A stretch of 64,000 nt of DNA, from the NCBI RefSeq assembly GCF_006345805.1, contig NC_043011.1, positions 63,686,464-63,750,463 on the forward strand, in the 5' to 3' direction. The notes under the pieces are model-generated. The model saw only the letters and a list, made by a program, of their open reading frames with translations. It was not told the DNA's origin and did no database searches. Shown one piece after another: positions 43 through 62,010 of the stretch. The DNA is from Octopus sinensis (Eukaryota). Every line of letters starts with the position of its first letter. The first letter of the stretch is position 1. The translations under genes were made by a program, and so were the position numbers.

Positions 43-860
43 TTATGTTTGACGTTTGCTTTACATTTGTACAAGTCGGCTCAAAGTATCACACAGAGAC
101 CTCAAGAGACAACAATTTGGAAGTTCATGTTGGTGTTATGCCTAAGGTGCCATATATTTGGTTTTGTACATAGTGTTGTTCTACAGAATGTTTGAGAACC
201 TATAAAAAAATTATGTGTTTGTTTTAAAACTTGAGATTTCATAAAGATTATTTTGCGTAGGATATCGGCAGTTCTCATGAGTACTATCTTTTGAATTTCT
301 GCCATTTTGGGGTTTCCCGGTATCTTAACTAGGTAGCAATCAGCCCCTTTTGCTATCATACCCAGGGCACCTATGACAACAGGTATTATTTTAGTCTTCA
401 TGTTCCACATTTTGCTGATTTCTATTTCAAGATCTTTATATTTGCTCAGTTTTTGGTATGTCTTGACAGATACGTTTATATCGATTGGGACATTCAAATC
501 AATGAGGAGGCATATTCTTTGTTTGAAGGCTTTCAATATGATGTCTGGCCTATTTGCATCTATCTTTCTGTCAGTTTGAATGGTGAAGTTCCAGAGGAGT
601 GAGATGTGGGCATTTTCAAGCACTGGAGGCATTATTCGCTCTCTTCGCGTATTTGCCATAGAGAGGTTTTTCTTGCCATTTATCTGTCAGAATATCCGAG
701 GCAGCAGTTTAAGCACGGGTTTTCATGTACTTGGCTTTTTCTACGCTTGTTTCTCGTATGTCTAATTCCGGAATTTTTTGTATTCGGAATTCACTGAGAT
801 ATTCCTTTGCCTGTTTTGTTACTGAGTATGATGCTTTCTTGTTTTCATGTTTTTATGTTG
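42..860 (-). mobile_element. 3' fragment of R4/Dong-like RLE non-LTR retrotransposon (family A), internally deleted, with (TAA)n tail at 1-41
   Basis: ORF 102-659 contains the RLE motif KIDANRPDIILK...CLLIDLNVP...KLSKYKDL. Nucleotide sequence matches 30590-31700, including the 3' UTR. Confidence 0.9.
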
Positions 861-5805: not shown

Positions 5806-5903
5806 TTACACACCTGCGAGGACAACGAGTTTCATTAAGATCAGGAGTGAGCTTTTAACAAATGCCTTGTTACTTGAGGAGGAAGGACCCATCTTCGGAC
5901 CAA
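5806..5903 (-). CDS. Gene g4 terminal exon: (V)GPKMGPSSSSNKAFVKSSLLILMKLVVLAGV*, GPI-signal-like
   Basis: Acceptor ttctatatattgcag, phase 1 (matches the exon-3 donor), small-residue run followed by a hydrophobic C-terminus, TAA stop. Confidence 0.75.
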
Positions 5904-8779: not shown

Positions 8780-8868
8780 CATTGCAATTCTTTACATAGT
8801 AGTTGTGGTAGATATTTCTGCACTGCAAGAACATGCTGAGGAAACATTTTTCTAGTATGAGCAAGCGA
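8780..8868 (-). CDS. Gene g4 exon 3: RLLILEKCFLSMFLQCRNIYHNYYVKNCN
   Basis: Acceptor ttttcttttcttttttgcattttcag, donor GTGAGA, 89 nt, phase 2->1. Paralogous to 26672-26760, 46512-46591 and 61922-62010. Confidence 0.85.
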
Positions 8869-9543
8869 CTGAAAATGCAAAAAAGAAAAGAAAATACTGT
8901 GAAAAAGAATGAACTTAGTTTGCGGTATTTTGGAATATTTTATGTAGGGAAATTAAGTCAAAGGTATAATATTAAATTGCATTGCATTATTGACGTCGAT
9001 AATATTGGAATGCTAATAATTTGAAGCCAGAAGCATAAAATGTCGTAGGGCATGAGAGTTCTTATTTGAAGGCACAGGAATTGACATAAGAAATTATTTT
9101 CAGCCGTACACAAAAAAACCTTGTGGCTGCTCGCATTTGCAATTTGAAGACGTATAGTTAAAAGAAAATTGCATTCGTTGAAGCATGCTTGCGTGTTTGA
9201 ATGGTTGAGAAAGGTTTGTTAAAACAATAACGGCTGGATTCTTAAGTCTGTTAAAGTTTTACTTTAGATTCTGTAATTAGCTATAAACAGAGAGGAAAAA
9301 AGAATTTGATCGATCATCGCGCCATAATATCCAAGATTTATATGCTCCTTCCGTGTTCTGTTACTTATGTATTCGGATTTCACATTATCAGAAAAATATA
9401 AAGAATGCCAAATATAAATATGATAAACCAAATATTTCCGGTTAATTTCAAAAGATAAACAAACAATTTCAATGAAAATGTGAGGAAATGATTAAGCGAA
9501 AAATAGATGATAACAGCGGTAATAGCTAGAAATATATTCATAC

Positions 9544-9643
9544 TTGCAATATTTAGCATCAGGCCTACGTACAGGATACATATGCCAGGCATCCTTGCAA
9601 TACTCTTTACCGATTACATCACAAGATTTCGTCGAGGAAACAC
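9544..9643 (-). CDS. Gene g4 exon 2: VSSTKSCDVIGKEYCKDAWHMYPVRRPDAKYC
   Basis: Acceptor aaatttgtag, donor GTATGA, 100 nt, phase 1->2. Paralogous to 38264-38363 and 48936-49035. Confidence 0.85.
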
Positions 9644-12341: not shown

Positions 12342-12381
12342 CTGTAATGAGTGCGGCCATAACTATGTGACTTATCATCAT
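12342..12381 (-). CDS. Gene g4 first coding exon (signal peptide): MMISHIVMAALIT(G)
   Basis: ATG, hydrophobic run, donor CAG|GTAAAT, phase 1. Parallels MKTILLVSVLIT(G) of g3. Confidence 0.7.
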
Positions 12382-16466: not shown

Positions 16467-16661
16467 CCTTAAAAAATATACCACGACGTCTACACATTTC
16501 TCACCTTGAACTTTCAACCTTGAACTTCTCCCCTTATTTCGCTCTCACGTCTCATGTTTGATCTTTGACCTCTGGCCGAAATCAGATCGCCATGTTGATT
16601 CGTTAGCTACTGCACGCATTTTTTTTCTCTCCTTCTTTCTGTGTTTTTCTCTCTCTGTGTA

Positions 16662-16699
16662 TCTTTCTGTTGAAGAGCGTAGGCTCGAAACGTTAAAGA
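16662..16699 (+). ncRNA. Minimal hammerhead-like motif in pLTR1
   Basis: TCTTT-CTGTTGA-A-GAGC-gtag-GCTC-GAAAC-GTT-AAAGA. Confidence 0.55.
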
Positions 16700-17135
16700 C
16701 CTGTTTTATTTATATTTCCTGAGCGCCATACTAATACAATTGTTCGTTTGTTTTCCACCTATTTTCATAAAGCTTCCCGTTATATATTATGCGCTCACGT
16801 GGTCTCACTTTCATCCTATATTCTACCAATACCACTATCAACACTTACCTCTACCTTGGATTTTCTTTACCTCTTGGATACTTACCATTGGCTGCACCTC
16901 TCTTTCGCGGATCAAAGTGACTTTGCATTGATGTGAAATCCTTAAAAAATATACCACGACGTCTACACATTTCTCACCTTGAACTTTCAACCTTGAACTT
17001 CTCCCCTTATTTCGCTCTCGCGTCTCATGTTTGATCTTTGACCTCTGGCCGAAATCAGATCGCCATGTTGATTCGTTAGCTACTGCACGCATTTTTTTTT
17101 CTCTCCTTCTTTCTGTGTTTTTCTCTCTCTGTGTA

Positions 17136-17173
17136 TCTTTCTGTTGAAGAGCGTAGGCTCGAAACGTTAAAGA
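17136..17173 (+). ncRNA. Minimal hammerhead-like motif in pLTR2
   Basis: Identical to 16662-16699. Confidence 0.55.
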
Positions 17174-17272
17174 CTTGTTTTATTTATATTTCCTGAGCGC
17201 CATACTAATACAATTGTTCGTTTGTTTTCCACCTGCCTTCGTCTTTTGTTTATTTTCATAAAGCTTCCCGTT

Positions 17273-17315
<43 letters not shown>

Positions 17316-18719
17316 GATCTTCCCCTCTCTGCGGCTGAACGCTCCGTCCTTGGTAGGGGTCTGCGTTTCATCCCCCTCACTCCATCCTGTAAGGAATTCC
17401 AGACGCGAGTTGATGTCCACAGCTTTGTGCGCCGTGTCCGGTTGGGTGCGCATTCAAATATTCTCTAATTTCACTGGTCCCACTCCTGAACTATATGGTC
17501 GTTACATTGACGACATTATCGGTGCCACCTCACTCTCCCGTGAACATCTAGATTCCTTCCTCTCTTTCGTCCAATCTTTCCATCCAGCTCTCCACTTCAC
17601 TTCCACTATCTCCAACACCTCTGTCTCCTTCCTCGACATTTCGGTTAGCATTCTTCACTCCACTCTTACCACCTCCATTCACTACAAACACACAGACTCA
17701 CACTCATACCTCAACTTTTCTTCTCCTCCCACCCAGAACACACCAAGCTTTCCATCCCCTATTCCCAATTCCTCCGTCTACGTAGGCTCTGTAGTGACGA
17801 CCATGACTTTGAGACTCAGTCTCAACGTATGGCTCACCACTTCACCCTACGTGGATACCCCTCACCCACTATCCACACCGCCCTTGCCAGAGCACGGTCC
17901 GTGGACCGGTTATCTGCTCTCTCCCCGAACCCGCCCTGTAGTCTCCCGCCTCCCTTTTCCCCTCACTTACCACCCACGACCCTACGTCTCCAACGCACCA
18001 TTCTTCGAGCTTTCCGTCATCTCCAGTCCGACCCGTCCACGTCACACCACCTCCCCTAACCGACCCTCCCCCTTTCAAACGAGCACACAACCTTCGAGAC
18101 CTTTTGGTCCATAGCTCCTTCCCTGACACTACCTCCCAACCCGGCTCGTTCCCCTGCTCCCGCCCACGTCGCCGCACTTGCCCTTACCTCTCCAACACCA
18201 CCCGCCGCACTAGCACCCACCATCGACCCTATCCCATCATCCACTCCTTCACCTGCACCTCCAGCAATGTTATCTATTGCGTATCTTGCTCTCTCTGCAA
18301 TTCCTTGTACAACGGACAAACGGGACGCCGCTTGGCTGACCGGTTCGCGGAACACCTTCGTGACATCCACCTTGCGAACGACACACCGGTTTCACGCCAT
18401 TTCCGCTCCACCGGTCACTCCTTGCAACATCTATCTGTGTTCGGTTTGTCCTTACACAGAGGCCATCCGGATTCCCGTTTGCGGCGTGAACAGGAATTAA
18501 TCTTCTCTCTTCGCTCTTATAAGCCATTTGGTCCCCCATCCTTCCTCCCCCATCCTCCTCCCCTTCCTTCTCCCCCTCCTCCCATCTTCCTCCCTCTCCC
18601 CCCCTCTTCTTCCCCTCCCCTTCTTTCCCCCCTCTTCTTCCCCTCCCCCCTCTTCCTCACTACACCACCCGACTTTACACATCACATCATATATGATGTG
18701 CCATACTAATACATACACC

Positions 18720-19130
18720 AACTAATACATACTAATACGCACTAATACATACTAATACATACTAATACATACACCAACTAATACATACTAATACGCACTA
18801 ATACATACTAATACATACTAATACATACACCAACCCTATACATACACACGTCCAGACCCCTCATACGCACTTATACTCTCTCATACACACACACACACAC
18901 ACTTATACATACTAATACGTACAAATACATACTAATACATACTAATACATACACCAACCCCATACATACGCACGTCCAGACCTATCCTACGCACTAATAC
19001 TCTCTCATACGCACACACACACACCCTTATACATACTAATACATACCAGTACATACACCAACCCTATACATACACACGTCCAGACCCCTTCTACGCACTA
19101 ATAGCTGGTCATTCAACCCTATTATCAACC
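18720..19130. repeat. Compound minisatellite (actaatacat 10-mers, 56-bp and ~120-bp higher-order units) inside the Penelope element
   Basis: Direct inspection. Confidence 0.85.
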
Positions 19131-23523: not shown

Positions 23524-23618
23524 TCAGGACAACGAGCTCATAAGTACCAATAATATGCTAATTCTGCTAATATTGTCTGAGCGATCTGCGTTGGATGCAG
23601 ATGTGGGATGAGTCACAT
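23524..23618 (-). CDS. Gene g3 terminal exon: (N)VTHPTSASNADRSDNISRISILLVLMSSLS*, GPI-signal-like
   Basis: Acceptor tatgtttcag, phase 1, S/A/N run then hydrophobic tail, TGA stop. Resembles the 60258-60367 and 5806-5903 tails. Confidence 0.75.
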
Positions 23619-26671: not shown

Positions 26672-26760
26672 TTTTGCAATTTTTTTTATAGGCCTCTCGA
26701 AAATAGACGCGACACTGCAGGAAATTGTTCGTAAAACAATTTTGATATAGAATGATGCGC
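26672..26760 (-). CDS. Gene g3 exon 3: RIILYQNCFTNNFLQCRVYFREAYKKNCK
   Basis: Acceptor ccaattttgtag, donor GTAAGT, 89 nt, phase 2->1. Shares CF...FLQCR...Y.KNC with g4. Confidence 0.87.
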
Positions 26761-26865
26761 CTACAAAATTGGAATATAATGTTATATGAAATTACTATTT
26801 CTAAATCTTATAACGAGAGATATTCAGCAACAGTACTTTGTAGTAAAGGTTGTTTGCCAACTTAA

Positions 26866-27030
26866 CAGGGCGGTCCGGGTTTAGGAGGAACGTTGCTGTA
26901 ATTTAGCCCCAGGAAACACCTCCTCCAGCTGTTTATGCGACACGATTTGTCGGGGTGTTAGAATCCCTTGTTCGAAAATATAAAGAAACAGATCGTGTCG
27001 TACAGCCATCTGGAGAGGATTGCCATGTTA
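26866..27030. mobile_element. Partial foldback MITE, same family as 63428-63608
   Basis: gggtttagga..aa.gttgctgtaatttagcc shared, plus an internal inverted segment. Confidence 0.6.
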
Positions 27031-27529
27031 CGTTGGTAAACAATCATTACAACATAATGCTATATGTAGTTTAGAGAAAAATAAATAATTAATTTGAAAT
27101 TCTTTCTAATTACATATGTACCAGGGTTTTCCGGACATATGTACTCTTTAAAAAATTGTATTCGCTGAAAAGACACACTTATGATAATTATGTAACGTTA
27201 CTTACAACACTTATGTTGTAGGTGTAAATTAATTGGCCCATAATTAGCGTTTTAAGTCAAATTTTTCTTCAAAGCCTACTCAGTTTGAAGGCAACAATAT
27301 TTCGGAATGAGCTGAGAGAACGAACTTTTGGATTGGTTTCCGCTTTAAAATTTAACTAGCTACAATCTAGTTATACAAATGTAAACCAAATAACATATTT
27401 CTTTCAAAACAGCTGCCAAAGAAATTTTTTCTAAATGTCTCCTCTCTGTACGAAATGGTGTATCCACAATTGAAATTCTATTAATATAACCCGACCACAA
27501 AGTCTCAATAATTTCTTGTTTGTACTAAG

Positions 27530-27664
<135 letters not shown>

Positions 27665-27666
27665 CA

Positions 27667-30600
27667 CCTGCTAATATATACATGCAATTGAATTCAGAAA
27701 TTAAAAAAATATATACACACTATACATATACATACAAACATATACATACAAACTATCAACAACAAAAATACAGAAGAATACAGATCTGCTAGCCTTAAGA
27801 AGCTGCGCTACGAGCAATACTTACGTGTAGAGAACCCTAAACTGACAGATCCATCTCCTAATGTAAGAGTGGAAGCTCGTCATGCTTCAATGTCAACAAA
27901 GCAAACTACAAACCGCATTGATCGTTGCGCGGATTACAAAAGAACACGTAACCGAAAATTGAACCAAATTCTGATTGAAAAATCAGCTACTGGATCAAAT
28001 CTTCCCAACACACAGGAGCTGGGCTTACCCCACAACCGGAATATTCCTACAGATGGTCATCCATACTCGTCACCAAATAATCAAAAGAAAAAGAAGGAAA
28101 AATGGTCTAGGGAAGATAATAAAGAAGTTCTTGCGGCCTTCTACCATGCCATATATTCCCCCACAGATAAATCGAACACTATACAAACCTACATAATCTG
28201 GAGACAGAAACACCCTGAAGTAAGACCCTACATAGACAGTAACAAACTTGCTAACGTCAGAAGAAACATTATAAAAAAAAAATTACTGACTGAAGTAGAG
28301 ATTGATCAAATTAGACAAGCAATATCGGATAGAATGAACGAAGCTGCAGCTAAAGAAGATAATACAGAGGAAATAATTATAGACCAGCCCAGGGCTGATA
28401 TAAACGAAGTGAGGATTGAAAGAGTTAGTATAAGTGATAGGCAAAGTGAAATACGCTAAGACAGATGAGCATCAAATAGATGAAGAAAGTCACACAAATA
28501 TTGACCCAACAGAACTACATGAGCTAAAAAAATCAAATCATGATTGAATGGCTGAAAATTAAAGAAACCAGCATGGATGAGCGTGATACACTTCCTAAAA
28601 TCTGCAACTCTAAACAAAACATGAAAATATTTGGTAATCCGGCTTGCACTAAAGGATATAATTTCAGTTAATGATGTTGATATCACAAGTCTCAACCACC
28701 TATACTATGCATCCGCGAAAATCTCAACGATCCTATGTGGTGTAAAGATTAGAAAACGGCAACATTCCCACAAAAAGCCTTCTTGGCAAGAGCGTTTGCA
28801 ACAACAATTTAAAATATTTAGATCTGACATTGAATATTTGAAAAACCTAGACTACCAAACCTACAAAAACCCAAAAATTAATGACAAAATATAATATGAA
28901 AACTATACTTGATTTGATGCCACCATAGAAACCATCAAACAAAAGGTATCTGCCAAACCTGCCCGCATAGCGAGGTATGAAAAGCGTGTTAGATTTTTCA
29001 AGTACAACAACATGTTCAAAAATAACCCCAATAATTTTTACAGGAAGATAGGAAAAACAGCAGTTACTGAAAGGTCTGTACCATCAAAAAAAGAAGTACA
29101 GGGATTTTGGAATAAAATTTGCGCAGAAGAAAAAACACACAACGAAAAGGCTCCCTGGATTGACAGAATATCTACAGAACTGGACTCCTTAGAAGAGCAA
29201 AAGTGGGAGGGTGTCAAGGTAGAAGATATAAGATCTGCTCTCAGAAGGTTAAGCAAATGGAAGTCTCCAGGAAAGGACAAAATTACTAACTTCTGGCTGA
29301 ATGCCTTCCCAGAGAGCCATGAACTGCTAACATAACTATATAATGATGTTTTGCAACACCCTAGTAGGAAGCCTCCTTGGCAAGTTAATGGGTTAGCATT
29401 CCTGCTTCCAAAAAGTGAAGAAACAAATGAACCAAAAAACTATAGACCCATAACCTGCTTAACAACAATGTATAAAACGCTAACATCTGTCCTGAAGGAA
29501 TATACTTATAGTTTTTTTAAGAGACAGCAGCATATTCCCTAATGAACAGAAAGAATGTAAACGTGGATCCTACGGTTGTAAAGATCAACTACTCATCAAT
29601 AAGATGATCTTAGAAGATTGTCAAAAACGACACAAAATCTTATCAATAGCCTGGATAGACTATAAAAAGGCTTTTGATAGCCTGCCACATAGCTGGATTA
29701 AGAAATGCCTGGGAATGTATAAGATAGCACCTACTCTGCGAAACATTTTGTCTGTAAGTATGAGATCATGGAGAACCACACTAACTTTGAACAGTGACAA
29801 TAAATCTCTAAATGCTGGTGATGTAAAAAATTCATGTGGCATTTTCCAGGGTGACTCAATGTCACCACTCCTCTTTTGTTTAGCCTTAATACCTCTCTCA
29901 AACTGCTCAATGACGCGCAGTAGGGGTATAAAATGTTTGATAAAAATATAAATCATCTCATTTACATGGAAGATTTAAAGCTCTTTGCAAAAAATGACAA
30001 ACAACTCAAGGGCTTACAAGCGATAGTCAAACAATTCAGTGACGACATCAGAATGCAATTCGGCCTCGATAAATGTGCAAAAGCTACCTTTATCAAAGGA
30101 AGAATGACAGAAACATCTAACGTTAACCTTGACCAGCAGAATGTCATAAAAAAACTAGACCCAGCGGAGAGCTACAACTACCTGGGGGTAATTGAAGGGG
30201 ATGGAATAAGGCATTCAGAGATGAAAAAAAAGGATCAGGAGAGAATGTTATTACAGCGTTAGAGCAATACTCAAGACAGAGCTGAATGCAAGAAACAGGA
30301 TCGAAGAGATCAATGCATTAGCCATACCAGTCGTGACTTACAGTTTCAATATCGTTAACTGGTCAATTACTGAAATATGTAATCTTGACAGAAAAATACG
30401 AAAACTGTTGACAATGCATAGAATGCACCACCCTCAGGCACATATAGAACGACTTTACCTGTCAAGAAAAGAGGGAGGCCGTGGACTTTTACAAATGGCA
30501 ATAACAATGAAGATTGCTACAATTGGCCTAGACACCTACCTGAAAAACTCTGAGGACTGGATGTTAAAACTTGTCTCAAAACATGAAAACAAGAAAGCAT

Positions 30601-31698
30601 CATACTCAGTAACAAAATAGGCAAAGGAATATCTAAGTGAATTCCGAATACAACAAATTTCGGAATTAGAGATATACATACAAGAAGCAAGCACAGAAAA
30701 AGCTAAGCGCATGAAAACCCGTGCCAAAACTGCGGCCTTAGATATTCTGAATGATAAATGGCAAGAAAAACCTCTCTATGGCAAATACCCAAAGAGAGCG
30801 AATAATGCAGATATTGACAAAGCCCAGACCCATCAATGGCTAATGGCCTCTGGCTTAAAATCTGAAACAGAGGGGTTTATCATAGCAGCTCAAGATCAAT
30901 GCCTACCAACAAGAAACTACCGGGCCAACATATTAAAAATCAGCAGCAGTCCAACGTGTTGTGTATGCCAGCAACAAAATGAAACCATTGAGCATGTGGT
31001 CTCCAAGTGCAGTCCTCTAGCGGCTACAGAGTATCTTAACAGACACGATAGAGCTGCACAATATATTCACTGGTTCATCTGAAAAAACCTGGATTTGCCC
31101 ATGAAAAAAAATTGGTGGGAACACCAACCACCCCCAGTGCTTGAAAATGACCACATTCAAACTGACAGAAAGATAGATGCAAATAGGCCAGGCATCATAT
31201 TGAAAGACTTCAAACAAAGAATATGCCTCCTCATTGATATGAGTGTCCCAATCGATATAAACGTATCTGTCAAGACCTACCAAAAACTGAGCAAATATAA
31301 AGATCTTGAAATAGAAATCAGCAAAATGTGGAACCTGAAGACTAAAACAATACCTGTTGTCATAGGTGCCCTGGGAATGATAGCAAAAGGGGCTGATAGC
31401 TACCTAACTCAGATAACAGGAAACCCCAAAATGGCAGAAATTCAAAAGATAGTGCTCATGGGAACTGCTCATATCCTACGCAAAATACTTTCTATGTAAT
31501 CTCAAGTTTTAAAACAAACATAAATTTCGGTTTACAAAAAAATAAAATTTTTAGACATTCATTAGTACAACCCCCCACCCAAATATATAGCACACTAGGC
31601 ATAACAACAACATGAACTTCCAACCCTGTTGTCTCTTGAGGTGTCTGGGTGAGACTTGGAGCCAACTTGTACAAATATAAAGCAAAAGTCAAACATAG

Positions 31699-31700
<2 letters not shown>
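27667..31700 (+). mobile_element. Near full-length degenerate R4/Dong-like RLE retrotransposon (family A)
   Basis: N-terminal KWSREDNKEV..., RT KSPGKD / NYRPITCL / WIDYKKAFDS / GIFQGDSMSPLLF / YMEDLKL, CxxC...H...C knuckle, RLE DANRP...IDMSVP, 3' UTR, (TAA)n tail. Multiple stops and frameshifts. Confidence 0.93.
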
Positions 31701-31751
<51 letters not shown>

Positions 31752-31798
31752 TGATAATAATAATAATAATAATAATAATGATAAAAATGATAATAATA

Positions 31799-31884
<86 letters not shown>

Positions 31885-31914
31885 GAAATAATAGTAATAA
31901 TAACAGAAAGAAAA

Positions 31915-34900
31915 TTGTAAGCGGAACAAATGGACCCGAGAAGAGTATAAAGAAGTAATATACGCTTATTACTATGCATTAGGTAGGCCATCTGAAGAGA
32001 GACACACCGCAAACTCTTACAGTATGTGGAGAACACGGAATCAAGACAGTAGACCCTATTTGGACGAGAACAAATTAGCAAATGTGAGGAGGGATATCCT
32101 TAGAAATAACAGACTCACAGACAGTGAAATAAGCGCGATCAAGCACGCAACCGAAATGACATAAATATAAGACACAAAGGAAATGAAGAATCAGATGAAC
32201 AGTATAGCCCGCCACGAGGCTTAATTGAAAGACTGCCATCTGACCAAAGTACGCAAAGGCCTGAAGATACAAGAAATTCTATTGTACCTGTTAAAGATAG
32301 CCAGGAAAACGATAAAACAACAGTAACTGAAGATCTCACATTTGCTGAAGAACACAGAGAGTCTATGGCAGAAATCAGGCAGAAATCCTGAATACGCTTG
32401 AAGTTGTAAGACATACAAGTATGAATGATAGAGAACCACTTCATAAACTCTCAAATACAAACCAAGATAAAAAACAAATCCAAATTGGCAACTATGTAAC
32501 AAATGAAATAATACGAGAATTAAAACCTGATTTTACTGAGTTAAATGAAATTATTTACGCTTCTGCTAGGGCAATTGAAACCAGCTGTATGACCCCGAAA
32601 AAACAAAGAAAACCAAACCTGGGAAGAAATTAAACCTGGAGATGTAAAATTGAAAAAGAGATTGAATTTATGAGAGGGGAAATATCAATATTAAATGAAC
32701 TAATATGTGGAAATGATGTAAGATCCAGAACAGGAAGAAAGATGAAGAGAAAATTTGGATCCTCACCAAGAGAAGAACCCATATCAATAAAAGAAACGCT
32801 GAAACAAAAAGTCCAAGCAAAAGCCCAAAGAATACGAAGATTTGAGAAGAGAAACACGTTTTACAAGCAAAATAAACTGTTCACATACAATGCCAAAAAT
32901 TTCTATAGAGAAATAGGGAAGGCGAAAGTAACCGTTAAAGACCCCCCTCCCATGGAAGAAATTCAAAACTTTTGGAAAAGGATTTGGAGTGACAAGAAGA
33001 CGTACCACATAAATGCAGACTGGATTATACAAACTGAAGGATCCTACCAAAATTTACAACAACAAGCATGGGAAGACATCACAATAGCAGACCTAAGAAA
33101 GGCACTCACGAAGGCCAATAATTGGAAATCCCCCGGTAAAGATTGGGTGCCGAATCTCTGGCTCGCAAACGGTAAGCTAGTTCAGCTGCTTACTGGAATT
33201 ATGAGAGACCCAAAGAAAACACCTGAATGGTTAGCAAGTGGTATTACTTACCTACTTCCAAAGAATAACGAAACCAACCTTCCAAAAAACTATCGGCCTA
33301 TAACCTGTCTATCCACCACGTATAAAATCCTAACATCTATCCTGGCGGAGAAAACATATGCATTCATGGAGAAGAACGATATTTTCCCTATTGAACAAAA
33401 AGGGTGCAGCCGAGGCTCTTACGGATGCAAAGATCAACTGCTAATTAATCTTATGACCCTTGAGAACTGTCACAACAAGCGCAGAAATCTCAGCTCCGCA
33501 TGGATTGACTATAAAAAGGCCTTCGACAGTATACCGCATCCATGGATCTTGAGATCGCTGGACATCTTCAAAATTTCCCCTGTGATTTCAAACTTCCTGA
33601 AGCACAATATGTCGTTGTGGAATACGAATCTCCAATTATACCACTCTAATGGATTACGTGCCTCAGAAAATATAAACATCAACTGTGGAATTTTTCAAGG
33701 TAACTCACTTTCACCTTTATTATTCTGCATAGCCCTAATACCCCTTACAAGTGAATTTAACAGAACAGGGTATGGGTATATATAATTGCCAATAAAAAAA
33801 GTAAGCCATCTATTTTATATGGATGACTTAAAACACTATGGTAAAGACAATAATGGACTTGAAGGCCTATTGCGCACCGTGAAAGCATTCAGCGATGACA
33901 TCGGGATGGAGTTTGGACTTGAGAAGTGTGCCACGGCCACTTTCCAGAAACGGAAAGTGAAGACCACAAATTCAGTCGTGTTAGATGTTGACACAGTCAT
34001 AAGAGAGCTTGAGCAAGAACAAACATACAAATATTTAGGGATAAATGAAGGCTCTGGTATTCAGCATGCAAACATGAAAGAGAAAATCAGGAAGGAATGT
34101 TATAGGAGAGTTCGTGCAGTCCTGAACTCTGAACTAAATGCACGTAACAATGTGTTAGCTATAAATTCCTTAGCAGTTCCAGTTGTGTTGAACTGGAATA
34201 TGAGTGAAGTAAAGAATATAGAAAGGAAAATACGCAAGCTGCTGAGTTGTGACAGGATGCACCACCCAAAGGCAGACGTAGATCGCCTTTACCTTCCCAG
34301 AGCCCAAGGTGGTCGAGGCCTGATCCAAATTGAACTAGCTTACAAAACAACCACAATTGGAGTGGCTAAATATCTCGAAATAACGAATGACTGGATGCAA
34401 AAGCTCGTGGAAAATCACGAGAGACGAAAGAAGCTTCATTCTATCATAACGGAAATCAAAAAATTGCTATTGATCTCGTGCAGGATACCCAAACTGAACA
34501 ACCCGAGGGAAGCACGGCAACTATTGTTGCAAAGAAGGTAAAAATAATGGCAATGAAAAAAGCGCTCGAGCAATTGGCTGATTGGTGGGATGAGAAACCT
34601 CTGCACGGCAAATATGTGGCCCGCAGCAAACAAGCTGATGTTGACCAGAAGGAAACCCATCAGTGGCTACGGAGCTCAGGGCTAAAAGGAGAGAGCGAAG
34701 GTTTCATCCTGGCTGCTCAAGATCAAAGCCTATTAACCCGGAACTACCAGGCCAATGTGATGAAAAATGGAGCAGACCCAATATGGCGATTCTGCAACGA
34801 CATGATCGAAACAGTGGACCACCTAATCTCTGGATGAAAAGTCTTAGCACCAGTGGAGTATAAATTAAGACATGACAGAGTTGGCCAATATCTACACTGG

Positions 34901-35540
34901 CTAATAAGTCGGCATTACAATATCAAAACTGCCGACATGTGGTATAATCACCAACCTGAGGCTGTTTCTGAAGGAGAAAATGTAACCATTCTGTGGGACT
35001 TTCCAGTACATACAGACCGAACCATCAAAGGCCAATAAACCAGATATTGTTGTGAAAGACCAAAACAATAAAGTTTGCTTATTGATCGACATGAGCATCC
35101 CCTGTGATCATAATATCTCGGCGAAAGAGTTTGACAAGCTCAGAAAATATAAAGACCTACTCATTGAAATTGAGAAAATGTGGCATCTCAAGGCGGTTAC
35201 AATACCAGTGATCTTAGGAGCACTAGGAATGATCAAAAAGGGAACCAAGAATTATATGAGAATGATCCCTGGCTTACCATCCCTGCAAGAAGTGCAAAAG
35301 ATTGTCTTAACTGGTACATCACACGTATTGAGAAGAGCATTGTCGTTGTGAGGACTGTTGCTGCTCATGTATTTTAATTTAACTTTAAAAAAATAAATAA
35401 AGGTTTTTTTTTAAATGAACGAACTATTGAGTTTGGTTTAATGGCCTACCAATGTATACTATTAGTTTCTTTGCCCTTGGAGTCGGGAAGACACTCGGCA
35501 AGAAATGGAAGCAAATTTGAAAGAAGAAGAAAAAAAGGAT
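31915..35540 (+). mobile_element. Second near full-length R4/Dong-like RLE retrotransposon (family B)
   Basis: KWTREEYKEV..., ORFs 32670-33785 and 33786-34541 with RT motifs (YMDDLK), RLE KPDIVVKD...IDMSIP, (TAA)n tail. Confidence 0.93.
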
Positions 35541-35541
35541 A

Positions 35542-35593
<52 letters not shown>

Positions 35594-35599
35594 TTAATA

Positions 35600-37210
35600 A
35601 ACGAAGGAGATGGTATACATCATGTAACTATGAAGGAAAAATCAAGGAAGTATTATAACACGAGAGTGAGTGCCATACTAAAACCTGAACTGAGTTCCAA
35701 AAAGTCACATCGAAGCCTTCAATGCCTTGGCAGTACCAGGTTTAACATCATTAAGAGAAGTCTTACAGGTCTCCAACGCATGGAGAAGAAAACTGCTAAC
35801 ATCCATGAATATGCATCAGAAGCAGACGTTTATCGGATGTATCTACCTAGAAACAACTGAGTAGCGAAATTATTGTGGTAGAACTGTGCTTATAAATCGT
35901 CCACAATAGCAATGGACGAATACTTATCTACTTCAAAGTTCTGGAAGCTGCTGTTTGTGTGCAAACACAAAAGCAGCAAAGAAAAAAAAAACACCTTTTG
36001 ATGTCAAGGGAGCTAGGTATTTTTCAAGAGATCTCAGCATTAACACTAAATTAGAAGAACCTGAAACCATTTCAACACAACAAGCAATGGGGATCAAAAC
36101 TACTGCAAAACCGAACAAGCAGAAACGAATTGACGAGCGATGGAGCCAGAAGCCACTGCATGGGCAACATATACTTCGACGCCACCCAAAGCAGGAGTAG
36201 AAAGATTACCTGTAAACAAAGGAAGGCAAAAGATTGTTAATATCAGTAGAAAACTGCGTGGATGTAGGTAGAGTAGATATTGACATCTTTGTAGATAATA
36301 GTAACGAAAGATTATTAGAAGCTGTTAGGCTCACAGCAAGCTAGGGAAGCCAAAACAAAACAAAAAAAATGATTTTAAAAACCAGAAAAATGTGCGGTTA
36401 TAATCTGACTGACAGGAGCAGGAGTTTTATGGTAAGATAATTTCAGAAAATAGTCGTTGTGGATGGTTATGGTTGCAGATAGGAAAGCTGAATTTGGAGA
36501 CAGAATGTTTGTTAGTAGCTGCATAATATGAAGCATTAAGAACAAATTTGAAAAATGCTTAGACAAAAACAAGAAGATTATCAATGTAGGTTATGCAAAT
36601 ATGAAGTGAAAAGCGTTAATCACATAGTAAGTAAATGTAGCATGCTGGCACAACAAGAATACAATAAAATCATGACAATATATGGAGAATAATCCAACGG
36701 GAGCTATGTAGAAAACTAGGATTTGAACATACTGATGAATGATATGAATATTAACCTCGTAAGGTACTAGAAAGTAAGAAATATAGGTTGTTATCGATCT
36801 TCAATATTCAGAGTGATAGAGCAATAGAAGCTAGAAGGCCTGATTTGCTAGTAGTAGCTAAAGGGAATCGAACGTGCCAGATGATTGACTTCACAGTCTC
36901 AAATGATGAAATATGTGTATGAGAAGTATAGGAAAATAGCAAAGTGTCAGGACCTAGCTATTTCAATAAAGAGACTATGAAATATACAAGTAGAATGTAT
37001 CCTAGATGTTATATGGGCATTGTGAACTATCCCTAAATATGCCAACAAATGGATAGAGGAAGTAGGCATAATACCCAGTTTAGTACAGGTTCAGAAAACA
37101 GTGTTATTAGGGATAGCTAAGATATTTAGCATGGTTTTTGGCATCGGAACCTTCTTTTTGAAGACGGATATTAGGATCATTTTCTTTTCCAAATGTCTAA
37201 TCCGTGGAGT
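35600..37210 (+). mobile_element. Third, older 5'-truncated RLE retrotransposon (family C)
   Basis: EGDGIHHVTMKEK, KPLHGQ, IEARRPDLLVV...IDFTV and VQKTVLLG remnants, followed by (TAA/TGA)n. Confidence 0.8.
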
Positions 37211-37273
37211 GTATATGAAAATAATAATGATAATAATAATGATGATGATGCTAATAATAAAAATAAAGATAAA

Positions 37274-37335
<62 letters not shown>

Positions 37336-37421
37336 TGATGATGATGATGATGCTAATAATAATAATAATAATAATAATAATATTAATAATAATAATGATG
37401 ATGATGATGATGATAATAATA

Positions 37422-37762
37422 AACTAAAACAATACCCTGGGAATTATAGCGAAAGGGGCTGATTGCTACCTAACTCAGATACCAGGAAACCACAAAATGG
37501 CAGAAATTCAAAGCATAGTGTTCATGGGAACTGCTCATATCCTACGCAAAATAATTTGTATGTAATCACAAGTTTTAAAACAAACATAATTTTTGTTTAT
37601 TTTTTTTTTGACATTCACTAGTACAACACTATGTACAAAACCAAATATATGGCACCCTAGGCATAACACCAGCATGAACTTCCAACTTGTTGTCTCTTGA
37701 GGTCTCTGGGTGAGACTTGGAGCCAACTTGTACAAATGTAAAGCAAAAGTAAAAAATAGAAT
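37422..37762 (+). mobile_element. Short 3' fragment of family A RLE element
   Basis: Matches 31340-31700, followed by (TAA)n. Confidence 0.88.
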
Positions 37763-37775
37763 AATGTTAATAATG

Positions 37776-37825
<50 letters not shown>

Positions 37826-37866
37826 TATTATTATTGTTATTATTATTATTATTATTAATATCATTA

Positions 37867-37966
<100 letters not shown>

Positions 37967-38263
37967 CATTATTATTATTATCATGATTATTGGCCAAGTC
38001 GTAAACTTGCAAAGTCTACTAGTATGTTTCAATCGAAACAGATCAGCTGCTCGACATGGTGCACCACCTGTGCTTTATAGTTGATGTTGCCTGCTTCATT
38101 AGAGTACGAATGTTTTATAAAAAATATTGCGAGCAATGACGAACAATCCATGATAGATTTAAGACAAATAAACGAAGCTAAATTGAAAAAGAAACGCACG
38201 AATGTATATGAAAATCGAATGAATATTGTAATAGCTGTAATAGTCTCAAAATTGTATTTATAC

Positions 38264-38363
38264 CTGCAGTATTCCACGTCTTTCTTACGTATAGGAAACG
38301 TTCTTAAGGCAGTCCTGCAAAATTTTACGGCCGTGTTTTCGCAAAACTTTAGTGTGGAGGCCC
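38264..38363 (-). CDS. Gene g3 exon 2: ASTLKFCENTAVKFCRTALRTFPIRKKDVEYC
   Basis: Acceptor tactcatttgcag, donor CAG|GTATAA, 100 nt, phase 1->2. Confidence 0.87.
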
Positions 38364-38727: not shown

Positions 38728-38764
38728 CAGTAATTAGAACAGAGACCAAAAGAATCGTTTTCAT
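38728..38764 (-). CDS. Gene g3 first coding exon (signal peptide): MKTILLVSVLIT(G)
   Basis: ATG-K-hydrophobic run, donor G|GTATGT, phase 1. Confidence 0.82.
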
Positions 38765-45857: not shown

Positions 45858-45994
45858 TTACATCAAAATAGATTTCTCTTCCCTTTCAAACATCGGTATA
45901 ACAATCAACAGAAGGAATGCGTATGAATTAGCAATGTTGGGCGAAGGAACACCACCATCTGTCTTTACAAGTTCATCAATTTGTGCAGGTGTAT
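45858..45994 (-). CDS. Gene g2 terminal exon: TPAQIDELVKTDGGVPSPNIANSYAFLLLIVIPMFEREEKSILM*
   Basis: Acceptor ttatatttcag, phase 1 is the only open frame, hydrophobic segment, TAA stop. Confidence 0.6.
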
Positions 45995-46511: not shown

Positions 46512-46591
46512 AATTGCAGACAATGGTCCTGAGAATTGTTGCACATGGTTCGAATATTGGCTGCAAACATTTCCTATATACAAGCACACGT
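46512..46591 (-). CDS. Gene g2 exon 3: RVLVYRKCLQPIFEPCATILRTIVCN
   Basis: Acceptor atatttatttttcag, donor GTATGT, 80 nt, phase 2->1, same R1/C8/C16 register as the paralogues. Confidence 0.8.
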
Positions 46592-48935: not shown

Positions 48936-49035
48936 TTGCAGTAATTCACATCTGGGTCGCATATAGGTTGTCTAAGCACGGCACTTGGACACGTCTTCGC
49001 AGCAAGTCTGGCGCAAAAGTCTGACGTTGAAAGAG
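48936..49035 (-). CDS. Gene g2 exon 2: LSTSDFCARLAAKTCPSAVLRQPICDPDVNYC
   Basis: Acceptor aaattgtag, donor AA|GTAAGC, 100 nt, phase 1->2, 8 of 32 residues invariant with g3 and g4. Confidence 0.85.
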
Positions 49036-60257: not shown

Positions 60258-60367
60258 TTACACCAACAACGATATAATGAGTATCAGTAATACATTCTGC
60301 GAAATGGCATTACTGGATGCAACATGTATTTCTATTTCTCTCTTATGTTCAACGGACGTATGTACGC
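60258..60367 (-). CDS. Gene g1 terminal exon: (C)VHTSVEHKREIEIHVASSNAISQNVLLILIISLLV*, GPI-signal-like
   Basis: Acceptor tttattttcactattccag, phase 1, ASSNA followed by a hydrophobic C-terminus, TAA stop. Confidence 0.75.
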
Positions 60368-61921: not shown

Positions 61922-62010
61922 AACGGCACGCTCTCATATAGAGATTTTTGAAACGAATACTGCATTCATCGGATAATTTTTCGAAACATTTGTAGTTTGC
62001 AAGCGTCCGT
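61922..62010 (-). CDS. Gene g1 exon 3: RTLANYKCFEKLSDECSIRFKNLYMRACR
   Basis: Acceptor cactttattcttatccag, donor GTAAGA, 89 nt, phase 2->1, R1/C8/C16/Y24/C28 conserved. Confidence 0.83.

Follow-up and report, generated by a model that had tools for sequence, protein, structure and literature searches.

The locus described here raises the question of whether a cluster of small six-cysteine genes in an octopus shares its ancestry with the N-terminal domain of the RGM proteins (RGM_N) and with neuritin (CPG15). The cluster lies in 64,000 nt of Octopus sinensis contig NC_043011.1 (positions 63,686,464 to 63,750,463 of the forward strand); this whole stretch is called the window, and all coordinates below are counted from its first base. 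It contains four tandem genes, g1, g2, g3 and g4, all on the minus strand. The gene under study is g4, whose core region, 8780-9643, starts at the first base of exon B and finishes with the last base of exon A. From the cysteine spacing of this region it had been proposed that the proteins are miniature members of an RGM-N/neuritin fold that was expanded in cephalopods (the original prediction). On the evidence presented here, we put at roughly 55% the probability that the octopus family is a divergent, octopus-expanded branch of glycosylphosphatidylinositol (GPI)-linked helical six-cysteine modules that include RGM_N and/or neuritin. The kinship to either is distant and is plausible but unproven. 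By sequence, the closest relative appears to be RGM_N, and by architecture and intron positions it appears to be neuritin, both at a considerable distance. The octopus proteins are assigned neither to the RGM family proper nor to the neuritin family, because defining features of each were tested and were not found.

The genes in the core region and their paralogues are real. The window is AT-rich, contains many CA/TA microsatellites and encodes spliced (eukaryotic) genes. Searches of the gene flanks with tblastx were swamped by these microsatellites, and the terminal exons were located by tblastn guided by orthologues. For g4 the orthologue is P0001 of Octopus bimaculoides (LOC128249788), a RefSeq-annotated protein of 108 aa with 77% identity, and the gene consists of four exons:

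12342..12381, minus strand: g4 exon 1, with the start codon and the signal-peptide h-region MMISHIVMAALIT, found by tblastn with the P0001 N-terminus.
9544..9643, minus strand: g4 exon A (100 nt), encoding Cys1-Cys3 and the YPxxxPD loop, with an orthologous exon in O. bimaculoides locus L001.
8780..8868, minus strand: g4 exon B (89 nt), encoding Cys4-Cys6 as (N)RLLILEKCFLSMFLQCRNIYHNYYVKNCN with a phase-1 exit, 87% identical to the P0001 exon.
5806..5903, minus strand: g4 last exon, with a Ser-rich linker, the hydrophobic tail VGPKMGPSSSSNKAFVKSSLLILMKLVVLAGV and the stop codon, found by tblastn with the P0001 C-terminus.

Exon 1 ends in a phase-1 donor (G/gtaaat, where the slash marks the splice site), and both internal exons are bounded by ag and gt. 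Exon A codes for (G)VSSTKSCDVIGKEYCKDAWHMYPVRRPDAKYC and has the 3' end TGC AA/gtatga, and the intron between exons A and B is in phase 2, within the codon directly after Cys3. Exon B has the acceptor ttttcag/T CGC and the donor G/gtgaga. The spliced coding sequence is open over 108 codons without an internal stop, and the resulting protein of 108 aa reads C3-x8-C4-x7-C5, followed by R and by KNC at Cys6. Across the window, exon A is 100 nt long in each of the three copies where it was found, exon B measures 89 nt in three of four, and the intron phases are identical throughout. The canonical splice sites, the identical exon lengths and the RefSeq-annotated orthologues in O. bimaculoides place g4 and its paralogues far beyond chance. 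Neither search of annotated proteins returned a protein near-identical to g4, which may therefore lack an annotation in this species.

These genes belong to a new, unnamed family that has expanded in Octopus. An exhaustive HMMER search with a profile of the core against 1.84 billion representative proteins gave 32 matches, about 28 of them genuine, and the family comprises at least 48 domains. Four candidates (P0025, P0028, P0030 and P0032) were dropped as members, being kringle or low-complexity artefacts. Every named match comes from O. bimaculoides, O. vulgaris or O. sinensis, no protein from outside the octopuses reached E < 0.001 in this search, and the members are currently all labelled 'uncharacterized' or 'hypothetical'. 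Thus the lineage expansion that had been proposed is borne out within the genus Octopus but not for cephalopods in general. Members carry one to nine domains. Single-domain members are made as precursors 100-115 aa long and have the signal peptide, the linker and the hydrophobic tail in common. The multi-domain type is represented by P0003, with nine domains and no hydrophobic tail, and by P0004 and P0006, with four and three domains, respectively, both with a hydrophobic stretch at the C-terminus. The same pair of exons, with intron phases 1, 2 and 1, encodes each domain of a two-domain O. sinensis gene. The domain module thus consists of a phase-1 boundary, the exon for Cys1-3, a phase-2 intron, the exon for Cys4-6 and a second phase-1 boundary, and this symmetry explains its multiplication in tandem, at the level of genes as well as of domains.

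When counted over the 45 complete domains, the framework C1-x7-C2-x16-C3-x8-C4-x7-C5-x11-C6 is kept in 27. The C3-x8-C4 spacing is nearly invariant (44 of 45), the C4-C5 spacing ranges from x6 to x8 across the family, and the motif YPxxxPDxxYCxRL is conserved among the domains. The spacing C3-x8-C4-x7-C5, which had been noted in all paralogues, was read directly in g2, g3 and g4 and occurs in 34 of the 45 family domains. For g1, whose Cys3 falls outside the visible sequence, it was confirmed only through the O. bimaculoides orthologue P0002, which reads FC-x8-C-x7-C. Two further features had been offered as signs of RGM kinship, namely an R after C5 and an NC at the sixth Cys. Both are present in g3 and g4, where the latter reads KNC, but g2 has A after C5 and 'VCN' at Cys6, and across the family the R after C5 and the N before C6 are each found in 8 of 45 domains. 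Because neither is conserved in the family, both were rejected as evidence of kinship. Relative to the O. bimaculoides orthologues, the ratio of nonsynonymous to synonymous substitution rates (dN/dS) is 0.89 for g4 and 0.65 for g3, and the proteins evolve fast over a fixed cysteine scaffold.

The precursors encoded in the window are about 106-108 aa long and start with a short signal peptide, followed by the core (about 62 residues), a Ser/Asn/Gly-rich linker and a hydrophobic tail of 11-15 residues, after which the protein ends. In g4, the tail looks like a GPI-attachment signal. The core of P0001, which is 73% identical to that of g4, was modelled with AlphaFold2 together with 46 family sequences. 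A non-helical fold, which would have refuted the original prediction, was not obtained. The model, with a predicted local distance difference test score (pLDDT) of 87.9 and a predicted template modelling score (pTM) of 0.73, is all-helical, with four helical segments at residues 5-15, 17-22, 32-42 and 48-62. C1 is located in helix 1, which stops at the YP loop, and C2 lies where the chain kinks from the first helical segment into the second. C3 and C4 are placed in helix 2, and C5 and C6 in helix 3.

The likeness to RGM is chiefly one of sequence. In RGM, the N-domain forms a bundle of three helices containing three disulfides, and its BMP/GDF ligands are bound by helix 3 and by the 'RGD' linker that joins alpha2 and alpha3 (PMC7354924). 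The solved N-domains of RGMA, RGMB and HJV (Pfam RGM_N, PF06535; structures include 4UHY, 4UHZ, 4UI1 and 6Z3G) read C-x4-C...C-x8-C-x7-C-R-G-[DN]...[HR]-N-C, with x21 between C5 and C6; the pattern given in the original prediction, C-x8-C-x7-C-R ... (H/R)NC, was therefore accurate. In a search of 24,736 Pfam models, RGM_N was matched by 23 of the 47 octopus domains (E <= 10, best 1.7e-4) and any other family by at most two. The RGM_N gathering cut-off of 24.2 bits is exceeded by two full-length proteins, P0004 (37.9 bits, E = 2e-9, in four stretches) and P0009 (29.1 bits, E = 1e-6, the best stretch covering profile positions 6-56 of 70), and P0011 and P0012 fall just short of it. When a profile of the 47 domains was compared with 177,635 distinct PDB sequences, RGMB N-domain chains occupied the top four places (E 0.03-0.17); RGMB was reached only with this profile, and a profile of 8 sequences gave no match among the PDB sequences. 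Comparison with small RGM alignments in HHalign gave P = 0.002-0.003.

This similarity exceeds what cysteine spacing and composition would provide, because shuffled sequences in which the cysteines were kept in place do not reproduce it. Against an RGM hidden Markov model (HMM) of our own, real domains average 6.4 bits compared with 1.0 for such Cys-fixed shuffles (mean z 2.5), and 28 of 48 real domains score within the top 5% of shuffle scores. In Pfam, 0 of 10 Cys-fixed shuffles of P0004 and P0009 matched RGM_N. The similarity is mostly limited to the Cys3-Cys5 stretch. Since the domains are mutually related, their RGM_N matches amount to essentially one observation, and the RGM profile is shallow because a search for diverse RGM sequences gave only 13 vertebrate fragments.

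The likeness to neuritin (Pfam NRN1, PF15056) is one of gene and precursor structure. Neuritin possesses six cysteines with the spacing C3-x8-C4-x7-C5, and its precursor has a signal peptide, a YPQxLDD loop ahead of Cys3 and a GPI tail; the segment CTYWEDFHSC-TVTALTD-C, also given in the original prediction, proved to be a 100% match. In both swordfish and deer, the neuritin gene is interrupted in phase 1 within the signal peptide (swordfish CAC ATA G/gt) and in phase 2 within the codon that follows Cys3 (swordfish TGC AC/gt...ag/T, deer TGC AC/gt...ag/A), the latter directly after Cys3 as in octopus, just as had been predicted. The octopus counterparts are ACA G/gt (phase 1) and TGC AA/gt..ag/T (phase 2), and every octopus gene checked agrees with neuritin in both intron positions and in their phases. 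As a rough estimate, an intron would share codon and phase with neuritin by chance in about 1 in 100-250 cases. There is no solved neuritin structure for comparison. In an AlphaFold2 model of neuritin (pLDDT 83), helix 1 carries C1 and C2 and stops at the YP loop, and C3, C4 and C5 lie in one long helix (31-70).

A number of results weigh against kinship with either family. No protein of the window reaches the RGM_N cut-off (g2 scores 12.9 bits; g1, g3 and g4 give no match), and against the RGM HMM g4 does no better than its own shuffles (z = 0.6), while g3 and g2 are marginal (z ~2.3). For RGM, the 29 columns that HHalign aligned around Cys3-Cys5 carry a probability of only 10-15%. A Foldseek search of the PDB with the P0001 model, which had been suggested as a check, gave a best E of 6 and only generic helical matches; the solved RGM N-domain chains, which the library contains, were not retrieved. 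The neuritin model likewise gave only generic helical matches, so Foldseek seems uninformative for such small bundles. The RGD/RGN-Leu-His BMP-contact motif of RGM is not conserved in octopus, nor is there a conserved G-[DN]-L. Moreover, the RGM_N domain occupies one exon in both RGM genes examined, RGMB of Saguinus and a further RGM gene on L006, a contig built from publicly available reads; the comparison of introns that had been called for thus agrees with neuritin but not with RGM, whose genes have no intron at this site. With respect to neuritin, HHalign detected no profile similarity beyond the cysteines (P = 0.4), octopus domains scored the same as Cys-fixed shuffles (z = 0.26) and none of the 47 domains matched NRN1 in Pfam (E <= 10). 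Between neuritin and RGM_N, in turn, there is no similarity. The octopus model has a helix break from C4 to C5, where the neuritin model is continuous; the C4-C5 segment contains Pro, Gly or Asp in many octopus members, which together with the model indicates a turn at this place, and the alpha2-alpha3 linker (RGD loop) of RGM lies after C5. The shared x7 spacing may therefore not be structurally equivalent. The GPI signal, finally, was judged by eye from its form. Taken together, the kinship first suggested stands in part: RGM_N scores exceed those of Cys-matched shuffles, but the signal is weak and is nil for g4, and neuritin has no profile signal.

A side observation concerns the Saguinus oedipus RGMB locus (L003, positions 560-640), in which the annotated protein P0049 ends early. 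Relative to the RGMB reading frame, the assembly has a 1-bp deletion after ...YHSAV, which is an assembly or annotation artefact outside the window and not an intron.

The main rival reading is one of coincidence. The family may be an orphan of the octopus lineage that shares its cysteine spacing, helicity and intron site with RGM_N and neuritin by convergence or chance. Such an origin is consistent with the search of 1.84 billion representatives, in which nothing outside the octopuses reached E < 0.001, with the Foldseek result, the HHalign probability of 10-15% and the restriction of the similarity to about 25-30 residues, and with the variation inside the family of the C4-C5 spacing, the R after C5 and the N before C6. 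In addition, a pair of cysteine spacings, taken by itself, should by our estimate turn up by chance in some of the numerous Cys-rich families. We nevertheless find an orphan origin somewhat doubtful, given that half of the domains select RGM_N from 24,736 Pfam models with two proteins above the cut-off, that the signal is lost in Cys-fixed shuffles, and that an intron at the neuritin codon and phase would, on the rough estimate above, rarely arise by chance (about 1 in 100-250). The intron evidence could instead be taken to mean descent from a neuritin-like gene only, the RGM_N matches being a motif-level accident. This would account for the identical intron positions and phases, where RGM_N has no intron, and for the fact that both are single-domain GPI proteins of similar size with a YP...D loop between Cys2 and Cys3. 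However, NRN1 was never matched, HHalign gave P = 0.4, the domains score no better than their Cys-fixed shuffles, the helices predicted from C4 to C5 are laid out differently in the two proteins, and there are length differences of 8 residues in the C2-C3 loop and 16 in the C5-C6 loop, all of which make a purely neuritin-like ancestry improbable.

Other helical Cys-rich proteins provide a further alternative. GFR-alpha and GAS1 are GPI-anchored helical Cys-rich proteins, and the UniRef name of one family member, P0008, is 'GDNF/GAS1 domain-containing protein', a signal that was not reproduced. An origin from domains of the GDNF-receptor/GAS1 type, or of the nematode DUF19 type as the original prediction had allowed, is highly improbable. 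Such domains carry about 10 Cys and not 6, their Pfam models were matched neither by any of the 47 domains nor by full-length P0008 at E <= 10, and the profile search of PDB sequences returned no GFR-alpha or GAS1 chain at E <= 10. Both identities were rejected for want of matches. The same fold might also serve another role, with the proteins acting as secreted effectors (antimicrobial, venom, or egg/sperm recognition) and not as membrane-tethered ligands. The fast divergence of the paralogues (dN/dS 0.65-0.89), the tandem expansion and the multi-domain P0003 without a hydrophobic tail form a pattern typical of secreted effector families. In contrast, single-domain members consistently retain the linker and the C-terminal hydrophobic tail, which would be needless in a freely secreted peptide, and an effector role is considered rather unlikely for this reason.

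On the favoured reading, the predicted structure of the core of about 62 residues is a small helical bundle that three disulfides would hold together. The predicted core and a tail of GPI-signal form together suggest a mature product that is a compact, disulfide-stapled helical knob on the outer leaflet of the plasma membrane. From its precursor, the single-domain product would most likely be tethered to this leaflet, and secretion is most likely for tailless relatives of 2-9 domains. By analogy, we infer that the proteins could act as surface ligands or co-receptors, with the partner bound via the exposed faces of helices 2-3, and the fast divergence of the paralogues would then give different specificities.

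To our knowledge, the RGM N-domain and neuritin have so far been treated as unrelated, and we know of no wider relatives of either. The octopus proteins combine RGM_N-like sequence with neuritin exon structure, and on this basis they might be regarded as a bridge that makes the two homologous, as descendants of one ancient GPI-linked three-disulfide helical module that octopuses multiplied into dozens of fast-diverging surface and secreted proteins. This bolder proposal is unlikely; if true, the family could constitute a cell-recognition code or a set of modulators of growth factors (BMP/GDF-type). It would also offer neuritin and RGM_N a possible common ancestry that is testable by structures. 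Lineage-specific expansions of neural surface molecules are a known trait of octopus genomes, and an unnamed, tandem-expanded family of small GPI-type helical proteins would extend that list. The only relatives detected, a BMP co-receptor domain and a neurite-growth factor regulated by activity, make the family a concrete candidate set for octopus-specific cell signalling.

The exons of the three paralogues in the window are as follows:

38728..38764, minus strand: g3 exon 1, encoding MKTILLVSVLIT, with a phase-1 donor; orthologue P0007.
38264..38363, minus strand: g3 exon A (100 nt), encoding Cys1-Cys3, with the phase-2 donor TGC AG/gtataa; 76% identical to the O. bimaculoides exon.
26672..26760, minus strand: g3 exon B (89 nt), encoding Cys4-Cys6; 100% identical to part of O. 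vulgaris P0010.
23524..23618, minus strand: g3 last exon, encoding NVTHPTSASNADRSDNISRISILLVLMSSLS and the stop codon; conserved with the O. bimaculoides last exon.
48936..49035, minus strand: g2 exon A (100 nt), with an extra (seventh) Cys in PIC and the phase-2 donor TGC AA/gtaagc.
46512..46591, minus strand: g2 exon B (80 nt), 9 nt shorter, so that the C5-C6 stretch is 3 residues shorter.
61922..62010, minus strand: g1 exon B (89 nt), encoding RTLANYKCFEKLSDECSIRFKNLYMRACR; orthologue P0002.
60258..60367, minus strand: g1 last exon, encoding CVHTSVEHKREIEIHVASSNAISQNVLLILIISLLV and the stop codon.

For g2, no convincing first or last exon was found in the window, so this may be a degenerate or decaying copy. 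Exon A of g1 was not found at 62.0-64.0 kb and probably lies past the end of the window. The O. bimaculoides locus L001 contains three orthologous or paralogous genes, also in tandem.

Exons A and B of g3 are 11.5 kb apart because of a retrotransposon inside the intron. This intron (26761-38263) measures about 0.5 kb in the O. bimaculoides orthologue. Within it, especially at 27869-34541 (plus strand), lies a degraded non-LTR (long terminal repeat) retrotransposon on the strand opposite to g3, with strong AT skew, and two reverse-transcriptase open reading frames (ORFs) at 32670-33785 and 33786-34541 (plus strand) match Pfam RVT_1. The O. vulgaris protein P0010 (CAI9735834.1, 168 aa) has one exon matched at 100% in the window and a second at 98%. 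It corresponds to the ORF 45992..45861 (minus strand), g3 exon B (26672-26760, minus strand) and an exon-A-like piece from outside the window, and it looks like a chimeric gene model spanning adjacent family members.

Repeats and mobile elements occur elsewhere in the window as well. Two ORFs, at 102-659 (minus strand) and 31095-31499 (plus strand), share a near-identical peptide, …QTDRKIDANRPDIILKAFKQRICLLIDLNVPIDINVSVKTYQKLSKYKDLEIEISKMWN…, and are probably copies of one retroelement tail; the former has no Pfam match. The stretch at 14-20 kb is repeat-rich with very strong negative GC skew. At 17350-18709 (plus strand) it contains adjoining Pro/Ser-rich ORFs of 254 and 201 aa without a Pfam match at E <= 0.01, in which NVIYCVSCSLCNSLYNGQTGRRLADRFAEHLRDI, judged by eye, resembles the GIY-YIG endonuclease motif of Penelope-type elements. 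Short peptide repeats are present at 16624-17184 (RLETLKTCFI at 16681 and 17155, about 470 bp apart) and at 18801-19079 (TCVCIGLVYVLVCISMY, about 230 bp apart), and they point to tandem duplications within this stretch.

How the octopus proteins compare with known systems can be stated briefly. Like the GDNF domains of GFR-alpha and GAS1 and like DUF19, they are cysteine-rich and predicted to be helical and extracellular, but those domains differ in cysteine number and spacing. With RGM_N they share six cysteines, the spacing C3-x8-C4-x7-C5 and a similar motif around Cys3-Cys4, D-x2-[FY]-C-x2-L-[RK]-x-Y-x2-C, and each is a small, all-helical and disulfide-stapled domain of a GPI-anchored protein, the helices and disulfides being predicted and the anchor putative in octopus. 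In contrast, the octopus domains stand alone or are repeated in tandem, and the precursors encoded in the window have only the linker and tail after the core, whereas RGM possesses an RGM_C/vWD-like domain with an autocatalytic GDPH cleavage site. The C1-C2 spacing is x7 in octopus and x4 in RGM, the C5-C6 spacing is x11 and x21, respectively, and in local alignments octopus C1 aligns with RGM C2. All octopus domains are split by the phase-2 intron after Cys3, which RGM_N does not have. The resemblance to neuritin lies in the arrangement of a signal peptide, a single helical six-cysteine domain and a C-terminal GPI signal (judged by form in octopus), and in the YP...D loop that separates Cys2 from Cys3. 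With 88 residues compared with about 62, the core of neuritin is the longer one, and the neuritin gene lacks the third intron of the octopus genes. Neuritin is a single-copy vertebrate gene, whereas the octopus genes form an expanded family.

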